From Octopus vulgaris (lineage: Eukaryota), in assembly GCA_951406725.2 (NCBI GenBank), contig OX597822.1:43420001-43482000 (forward strand): a stretch of DNA of 62,000 nt. The letters are read 5' to 3'. Below the pieces are notes generated by a model. That model worked only from the letters and a program-made list of their open reading frames with translations, searched no databases and was not told the origin of the DNA. Positions 36,575-38,448 of the stretch are shown here, one piece after another (within the stretch, counting starts at the first letter, position 1; every line of letters starts with the position of its first letter). Made by a program: the position numbers and the translations under genes.

Positions 36575-36756
36575 TATATATATATATATATATATATATA
36601 TATATGTATGTATGTATATATACATATATATATGCATGTATGTATATATGTATATATATATATATATATATATATATATATATATATATATATATATATA
36701 GAGAGAGAGAGAGAGAGAGAGACAGATTATCTCTCTCTCTTTCTATCTATCTATCT

Positions 36757-36945
36757 ATCGTGACAATTGGCTCGCCACCTTCCGTCAACCGGGAAAGCAA
36801 TGCAGTCTTCATCGTACTGGTGGCCATAGTGAAAGAATGTGTCTGGTGGACTCGCACGAAAAGTTTTGAGACAAACACTTACCTCTCTGGCCAATCGCTC
36901 ATCAACTTTTTCAAGTACCAGTTGAAAAGGAAGATGAGAATGGAG
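36757..36945 (+). mobile_element. Tx1/L1-like ORF2 C-terminal fragment between (TATC)n arrays
   Basis: [63 protein letters not shown]. Confidence 0.65.
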
Positions 36946-37050
36946 TTATCTATCTATCTATCTATCTATCTATCTATCTATCTATCTATCTATCTATCTA
37001 TCTATCTATCTATCTATCTATCTATCTATCTATCTATCTATCTATCTATC

Positions 37051-37597
37051 TCTGGTGGACGCGCCTGAAAGGATTAGAGACAAACACTTTCCTCTCTGGT
37101 CAATCTCTCATCAACTTCTTCAAGTATCACTTGAAGAGGAAAGTGAGAGTAGAGAGGCAAGTTTTGTCTAGTGAATGTTTTAAAAAAAGATGGGTGAATG
37201 TAGCAAGGATGGCACGTATGAATGATGAAGCCACCTTGACTATGATTCTATGAACCGTAAAAATTAATACAGAGAGTTGCTTATTTGCAAAAAAAAAAAA
37301 GAAATATAAAATGTGACTTCATTGACCGAGGTTACCGTGGTCTTTTCCGTAGGCTTTTCTTTCCACGGGTAAACCTCACCTGTCCTCCCCTTTACACTTC
37401 ATATTGACATTTCTGTGATATCGATCCCTATTAATCAATTTTTTTCCTTATCCCCCCCCTTTTTTTGTCCTCTTTCTTTCCTTTTACGATCCCTTTTGAT
37501 CGAAAACCAAACCGCCTTTTTTTTACCCCCAAAAGAAGAGCTCTGCCTTGTAATTTGTCCTGTCTGTATGCAGCCCTGTGTGGCTAATAAAGAAACA
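37051..37597 (+). mobile_element. Tx1/L1-like LINE 3' end (ORF2 C-terminus to stop at 37253, plus 3'UTR) inserted in (TATC)n
   Basis: Open frame [50 protein letters not shown]...MIL* fits the K..IW.TR...F...L..R.R.E...F...W pattern of Tx1 ORF2 ends; AATAAAGAAACA then (TATC)n. Confidence 0.7.
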
Positions 37598-38448
37598 TAT
37601 CTATCTATCTATCTATCTATCTATCTATCTATCTATCTATCTATCTATCTATCTATCTATCTATCTATCTATCTATCTACATATTCATGTATCTATCTAT
37701 CTATCTATCTATCTATCCATCTAGGATTATATACATAGACTCTCTCACCTTCTCTCTATATATGTATGTACAATTATGTAAATAATGTACATATATATAT
37801 GCATATATGTATACATACATATGCATACATATATGTTTGCATAAACACATATACACAGGCCCAGGGGAGAGAGGAGGAAGGGGGAGAGAAAGGAAGAGAT
37901 AAAGATGGAGGGATTGGTATATTTACTTAGTAAGATATTTATTTTTGTTTTTATTTCAAAATATACAATAACATATCTTCATTACCGGTTCTTGATACGA
38001 AATTATGTATAATTTTGTTGTATATAAATCGCATATAATTGCGTAGTATAATGTAATGGCGCATAGAATCGAACAGTGAACAAGGTAAACAAAAACTTTT
38101 AGAAAAACGACAAAAACAAAAGAAAAAAAAGGCTAAAAAGAAGCCAGACAATTAAGTTTCACGAATATATTTCTTGATATTAAATTAGAATGGGTCTCTC
38201 AAAATGGTTTTATTCTTTGAGTATAACCATTTTCCAGAATATTTTATGTCTAAAAGACGTATGGAGAAAGGATACAATGTGAGACCTTTCGTTATTTGTT
38301 ATTGATTATTGATCTCTGTCAGACATTTAATATATAACAGCAATTTCGTGCTTGAACTCCAAGTTAACCCGTGTCAAATGTATTGGTGGCTTTACTCTCA
38401 TTGAGTAATTTTATTAAAAATATTTCGGAAGGTCTCCATTTCATAATA

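Follow-up and report, generated by a model that had tools for sequence, protein, structure and literature searches.

The window, as the whole 62 kb stretch of octopus DNA analysed here is called, holds three LINE pieces that adjoin arrays of the tetranucleotide TATC (Table 1). The first-pass annotation of this DNA had placed these pieces within (TATC)n in a single orientation, a layout that has been confirmed for all three of them: on the sense strand of the LINE, the adjoining arrays read TATC and never GATA. It had also been noticed that both pieces with an intact 3' end stop at the same terminal sequence followed by TATC, and this proved to be correct.

Table 1. LINE pieces and adjoining tetranucleotide arrays in the 62 kb window
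Feature	Position	Strand	Remarks
(TCTA/TATC)n array, 16.8 units	2330-2396	+	Target array on the 5' side of the 2397-2580 piece
Diverged copy, last ~184 bp (3' UTR)	2397-2580	+	80% identity to a young full-length copy; terminates in AATAAAGAAACA
(TATC)n grading into (TGTC)n	2581-2679	+	Target array on the 3' side of the 2397-2580 piece
(TATC)4	36744-36759	+	Borders the 36760-36945 fragment on its 5' side
Fragment of a diverged relative, ORF2 residues ~1059-1126	36760-36945	+	63% amino acid and 79% nucleotide identity; both ends truncated
Perfect (TATC)26	36946-37050	+	Separates the two LINE pieces
C-terminal 67 codons of ORF2 plus stop codon, 5'-truncated copy	37051-37253	+	97% amino acid identity to an intact copy
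3' UTR (344 nt) of the 37051-37597 copy	37254-37597	+	AATAAA signal inside the terminal AATAAAGAAACA
(TATC)n, 31 units with interruptions	37598-37723	+	3' flank (target)

The three pieces had been taken for members of one LINE family. All of them lie in (TATC)n, but they do not form a homogeneous family, as their nucleotide identities to a young full-length copy are 93% (37051-37600), 80% (2383-2583) and 79% (36754-36945, with 63% at the protein level). The most diverged piece shares an ATC microhomology with the repeat at its 5' junction. Its 3' side, although also truncated, still adjoins the (TATC)26 array, for which a deletion between arrays, internal priming and array expansion are candidate causes.

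Arrays of (TATC)n with at least four units make up ~1.0-1.1% of the bases in the window and its distal flanks. Seven (TATC)n loci were found in the 62 kb (2332, 15451, 16172, 36744-37717, 42416, 56406), four of them without a LINE piece. All seven show TATC on the + strand and none shows GATA, a uniformity that could be due to chance (~1 in 30) or to a regional strand bias. Other repeats are also present. The region from 43 to 54 kb is full of (AAT)n arrays, and another LINE piece (44579-47342, + strand) is located there, flanked on both sides by (AAT/ATA)n arrays that share one register (44401-44578 and 47343-47480). This piece contains an ORF of 411 aa (45745-46977) with a weak zf-RVT match and a match to the C-terminal zinc-knuckle/restriction-like endonuclease region of an R2 protein (E 1e-4), and it is probably a Dong/R4-like element located in (TAA)n, the target known for such elements. 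Unrelated tandem duplications of longer period occur at 22309-22675, 27915-28074, 31441-31709 and 53659-54086, with units of 184, 40, 99 and 226 bp, respectively.

The octopod family has been described from natural copies, with no consensus built. Full-length copies of this non-LTR retrotransposon (those at the loci L031, L037 and L040) measure 6.2 kb. They begin with a 5' UTR of ~218 nt, which starts with (G)GACAGACAGACGC, and continue with ORF1, a spacer of ~50 nt, ORF2, and a 3' UTR of ~345 nt that terminates in AATAAAGAAACA and holds an AATAAA signal 6 nt before the 3' end of the element. ORF1 encodes a protein of ~730-770 aa (open frames of 727-772 aa were found in many copies) that starts with MATGHHEAE and contains a long low-complexity part and one CX2CX4HX4C knuckle; this motif is visible in the sequence, while the Pfam zf-CCHC profile scores 17.9-19.2 bits, below its cut-off of 20.8. 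ORF2 encodes 1145 aa counted from the first ATG, with an N-terminal AP-endonuclease (Pfam Exo_endo_phos, E 5e-15, residues 20-210), a reverse transcriptase (RT) with a YADD motif (RVT_1, E 4e-32) and, at the C-terminus, a zf-RVT domain of the CCHC type (E 1.6e-7, which passes the cut-off). Stretches of ORF2 resembling the AP-endonuclease motifs VNARG, SET, GDWN and TDH were recognised by eye, without a reference alignment.

Two features of the ends deserve mention. The start of the element, GACAGACAGAC (L031:3324, L037:3334, L040:3334), matches in reverse complement the (TGTC)n variant frequently found next to TATC arrays, for instance at 2637-2675 of the window and at L029, L031 and L038; this likeness may be a coincidence or may be tied to the joining of the 5' end. 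At the other end, a conserved stem-loop was not supported when the last ~80 nt of three copies were folded, as the resulting structures were no better than those of shuffled sequences (z +0.7 to +1.4). The existence of a SINE partner sharing the 3' end was also considered, but it is not claimed here, since the depth profile and the loose ends can be explained just as well by 5' truncation and by variants among subfamilies.

A genome-wide exact-pattern count in the assembly (2.8 Gb) revealed 6,052 occurrences of the 3'-terminal 24-mer of the family and 121 places with the exact 29-mer of the 5' end, and a first look at the 5' region gave ~730 candidates. The median pairwise nucleotide identity among 12 copies fetched through ORF2 is 99.1%. 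The full ORF2 frame of 1152 codons is open in 36 of the 64 ORF2 matches scored, and at least seven copies are open in both ORF1 and ORF2. Because many copies are ~99% identical and several keep both ORFs open, the family is very young and is probably active and still mobile; its youth and its abundance are both unusual. Near-identical sequence is also present in sequencing runs that bear four organism codes, and four runs presumed to be RNA yielded only short contigs. For the N-terminal part of ORF1, the same score recurs at 25 or more places, each with an open frame of 772 aa, a pattern suggesting that one subfamily has multiplied very recently. Pieces of the family that are nested or in tandem, separated only by TATC units, were observed at ~8 of 30 loci (among them L003, L011, L020, L022, L038, L040 and L043); up to four pieces are present in L011 and L038. 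Some of the pieces at these loci carry a variant 3' UTR (…ACACTGTGATACACGATCCCTATTGATCG…).

The element had been proposed to be L1/Tx1-like, and the ORF2 comparisons bear this out. Among solved structures, the best match extending across the endonuclease and the RT is human L1 ORF2p (E 3e-55, 191 bits), while R2 proteins match the RT alone (~78 bits). The best named relative outside cephalopods is Tx1 from Xenopus (YTX2_XENLA), with 335 bits and 29% identity over 78% of the query; for comparison, Tx1 and human L1 ORF2p match each other with 263 bits. The best named protein relative of all comes from the octopod Argonauta hians (65% identity). In a quick maximum-likelihood tree, the octopod family, the Argonauta protein and 15 unnamed proteins from metagenome assemblies form one clade, whose sister group consists of Xenopus Tx1 and teleost sequences (SH-aLRT 92). 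A plant L1-like protein falls outside both, and the non-Tx1 rows of the tree comprise this protein and other distant, mostly unnamed RTs. The bit scores and this tree fit a tentative placement inside Tx1. A metagenome scan with one of the relatives gave no match.

An old Tx1-like fragment is also present in the window at 60120-60840 (+ strand), which aligns to ORF2 residues 1014-1072 with 42% amino acid identity. The 3' end of this fragment resembles that of the octopod family (…CCCCTGTGGAACATAAAAGAAA) but is followed by TCATCATCA; it may represent a relative with a different trinucleotide target. Diverged relatives appear either to keep the (TATC)n target, as the window pieces with 79-80% identity do, or to use other repeats, as in the case of this fragment (TCA).

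The relationship between the family and its flanks was studied in several samples. The one of full-length 5' ends was defined by the exact 29-mer and is thus independent of the flank; later junctions were sampled by exact-pattern counts and by alignments that included the flank, and copies ranked by BLAST are biased toward well-matching ones. On the 3' side, a perfect TATCTATC comes next in 4,604 of the 6,052 exact ends (76%), and 30 fetched loci comprise 25 clean arrays, three degenerate ones and two without any. On the 5' side, TATCTATC is found within 8 nt upstream of 63 of the 73 full-length ends located on contigs C1-C8, and five more have an aligned TATC flank, which gives 86-93%. The genome-wide count for the reverse strand is 44 of 50, and queries containing the flank retrieved ~68 distinct full-length 5' ends with TATC, although the ranking favours such copies. 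Among the 5' junctions of truncated copies read in fetched loci, ~33 of 38 (~87%) lie in TATC-type arrays in the orientation of the element and none in GATA; with a background of ~1% of bases, the probability of finding this many junctions in arrays by chance is ~1e-59. The proposal that the family is site-specific for (TATC)n is thus upheld by 5' flanks that are clearly non-random. Target specificity has been recognised elsewhere when one kind of sequence occupies more than 20% of the flanks (PMC4494074), a share exceeded here by a wide margin on both sides. The pattern of a self-carried tail, with a 3' repeat at any site and a 5' flank devoid of it, was not the one observed, nor was the (TC)n or (TTC)n target of the Kibi/Koshi type; the target is (TATC)n.

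Three further observations bear on what the repeat represents. Only ~5 of 29 upstream arrays are preceded by the 3' end of another element, the other ~24 starting in unique DNA or in other repeat variants; therefore, the family is not merely nesting in its own tails. One off-target copy (L033/L008) lacks TATC at both of its sides; it ends in ...GAAACA and shows a 6 bp duplication (TATTTC), and because of this copy the repeat is considered target and not a tail borne by the element. Finally, the length and nature of the neighbouring repeat vary: L029 has a long 5' array and just two units on the 3' side, L037 has (TA)n at the 3' side, and (TC)n appears as an occasional neighbour (L002). The (TATC)n repeat is part of the target, and no long tail is carried by the element. 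This integration specificity is strong, yet it is not absolute, as unique 5' flanks were found at five junctions (L011, L016, L033, L034 and L041).

The exceptions at the 3' end follow recognisable patterns. About one quarter of the exact 3' ends are not followed by a perfect TATCTATC, being found next to variant arrays, (TA)n, AT-rich unique DNA or, in ~19 cases, (CA)n. A base other than T comes next in ~2% of the exact ends. Ninety-nine of these were listed, and they include ~47 TATC arrays with an altered first base (CATC, AATC or GATC, then TATC...), ~19 (CA)n arrays that prolong the terminal ACA, a few CATC, TA or TC arrays, ~19 cases of unique DNA and one GATA array. In another ~8% of the ends, ACATAT is followed by a base other than C, and the rows in which the letters were displayed show (TA)n or AT-rich unique DNA at this position.

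With respect to the 5' junctions, the short microhomologies at truncation points described in the first-pass annotation are real: 11 of 13 clean truncation junctions in fetched copies share 1-5 nt with the repeat, compared with a chance expectation of 25% (p ~1e-5). In full-length copies, the spacer between the last TATC and GACAGAC is variable (G, TG, TCTG, TCTCTG, T and others).

During target-primed reverse transcription, the sequence with which the 3' flank begins is complementary to the primer. The 3' junctions therefore point to primers ending in ...GATA-3' at normal sites, in ...ATA-3' at AT-rich off-target sites and in ...TGT-3' at (CA)n, and all three of these ends can pair with an RNA ending in ...ACA(UAU). 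As AATAAA lies 6 nt before the end of the element, cleavage of the RNA should fall in the downstream repeat. The following pathway can be postulated from these data. The transcript would extend a few units into the repeat downstream of the donor copy. The endonuclease of the element would nick the GATA strand, and the freed ...GATA-3' end would pair with the last bases of the RNA, ...ACA plus the UAU(C) read through from the donor flank. This pairing would prime reverse transcription, with cDNA synthesis proceeding from ...AAACA, and the 3' end of the cDNA would be joined to the upstream TATC DNA via a microhomology of 1-5 nt, often after 5' truncation.

It is very probable that this is a high-copy, young non-LTR element that belongs to the L1 group and is nearest to the Tx1 clade, and that (TATC)n/(GATA)n is its preferred site of integration, entered in a single orientation. 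The accumulation of (TATC)n around the copies could also originate in other ways. Some LINEs carry a repeat as their own 3' tail, for instance (TAA)n in the I factor and short repeats in CR1/L2 elements, and (TATC)n might be such a tail on an element that integrates at random. Nearly all 3' ends are indeed followed by the repeat, in a constant register after ...AAACA. Against it, the repeat immediately precedes 86-93% of the full-length copies and ~87% of the junctions read as well, in the same orientation; copies at non-repeat sites are devoid of tail (L033/L008), and others hold just one or two units on the 3' side (L029, L002). The 5' flanks already refute this explanation, which can be considered extremely improbable. 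Hardly more credible is that insertion is random and that copies passively survive or accumulate in microsatellite-rich DNA of low recombination, or that the element homes only into tails left by older copies. The nested and tandem pieces, seen at ~8 of 30 loci and in the window, would agree with this, as would the extreme abundance of microsatellites in the genome. Nevertheless, under passive accumulation the copies should lie in both orientations and favour no single motif among the many present, and GATA was observed in none of the 5' flanks and in one of the 99 odd 3' flanks; moreover, ~24 of 29 upstream arrays have their start within unique DNA or within other variants of repeats, and copies that are ~99% identical are too young to have been sorted by selection.

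A more serious competitor of a selective endonuclease concerns the step at which the target is chosen. The preference could arise mainly from pairing of the RNA 3' end with any nicked DNA, with an endonuclease that is loosely AT-preferring and (TATC)n being favoured because read-through transcripts end in UAUC repeats. Off-target 3' junctions do retain microhomology to the end of the RNA, as in the (CA)n arrays that follow ACA (~19 of 99) and in the (TA)n or AT-rich sites that begin with TAT (L033 and L037 among them), and the proximity of AATAAA to the end leads to the expectation of cleavage inside the downstream repeat. However, the orientation bias is strict and the perfect target is used in 76% of cases, even though (TA)n and (AAT)n arrays are far commoner, which suggests that the nick itself is selective. 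In addition, the endonuclease is regarded as the main determinant in the target-specific LINEs of the APE type studied so far (PMC4494074). A preference based mainly on pairing is therefore regarded as unlikely, although it deserves far more weight than either of the two preceding explanations.

Taken jointly, the data allow a broader reading, put forward here only as a tentative possibility, according to which the family is a Tx1 lineage active at present, with an endonuclease that serves as a natural nickase specific for one strand of the GATA repeat, and acts as a major shaper of (TATC)n arrays. If this were true, molluscs would have their first characterised Tx1 family with microsatellite specificity, its more than 6,000 copies would shape the unusually abundant (TATC)n arrays (~1% of the genome) by splitting, nesting and seeding them, and the group could reveal how an APE endonuclease becomes retargeted.

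Target-specific LINEs are models for the way in which the AP-endonuclease and the 3' end of the RNA choose a site, and they are possible tools for the insertion of genes at safe sites. The octopod family offers hundreds of near-identical copies, many of them with open frames, together with a short, simple target and natural off-target events, and because of these properties the contributions of the endonuclease and of RNA pairing are directly testable. It also explains the recurrent sequence that flanks TATC microsatellites in this octopod genome, which is relevant to marker design and repeat annotation, and it extends microsatellite targeting in the Tx1 clade from vertebrates to molluscs.

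Elements of the L1-Tx1 group are common in molluscs, cephalopods included (PMC10294476, PMC8967140), and 13 recently active L1-Tx1 families with 421 insertions have been reported in Octopus vulgaris, with their targets not stated (PMC13282606). As for the targets of the clade, Kibi and Koshi of teleost fishes insert into (TC)n and (TTC)n, respectively (Kojima and Fujiwara 2004, as cited in PMC4494074 and PMC3812793), several crocodilian families (Tx1-1_Crp and others) prefer (TTCC)n or (TTTC)n (PMC4494074), and Tx1L of Xenopus laevis inserts into the DNA transposon Tx1D (PMC4494074). Outside this clade, Waldo and Mino, insect elements of the R1 clade, use (ACAY)n and (AC)n (PMC3812793), and among the LINEs with a restriction-like endonuclease, Dong/R4 uses (TAA)n (PMC3812793) and Togen uses (TG)n; the microsatellite targets listed here are compiled from PMC4494074, PMC3812793 and PMC4640811. 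The first-pass annotation had named no described family with a tetranucleotide target. As a general statement this does not stand, given the (TTCC)n, (TTTC)n and (ACAY)n families (PMC4494074, PMC3812793), but it does for this motif, as no LINE for (TATC)n/(GATA)n was found described in the literature searched, although the family may already have a name in Repbase or Dfam.

The octopod element resembles Kibi and Koshi in being an APE-type LINE of the L1 group found in one microsatellite motif in one orientation, with an ORF2 that combines an endonuclease, an RT and a C-terminal zinc-binding domain. It differs from them, as far as their descriptions set them apart, in a target that is not a polypyrimidine and in its host, a cephalopod mollusc. 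One RT protein from Tetraodon and two from Oreochromis, of unnamed family, group with Xenopus Tx1 in the quick tree and not with the octopod family. A preference for a tetranucleotide microsatellite, judged by the share of a motif in the flanks, is common to the crocodilian families, from which the octopod one is distinguished by its motif and host, by a flank share far above the 20% criterion, and by being very young with many open copies. Tx1L shows the same order of ORF2 domains, but its target is a DNA transposon and not a microsatellite.

Waldo and Mino are likewise APE-type LINEs that insert into microsatellites, including one with a 4 nt unit. They probably represent a clade different from that of the octopod family, whose ORF2, among the L1, Tx1 and R2 proteins compared, aligns to human L1 ORF2p across endonuclease and RT (191 bits) and best to Tx1 (335 bits). 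Dong/R4 is also a microsatellite-specific LINE; it carries a C-terminal restriction-like endonuclease and lacks an AP-endonuclease, so its cleavage is unrelated to that of the octopod element. Because Tx1 families for (TC)n, (TTC)n, (TTCC)n and (TTTC)n have already been described, the octopod family is not a new kind of element; the principle of microsatellite targeting in Tx1 was already known, and what appears to be new here is its (TATC)n target and its mollusc host.
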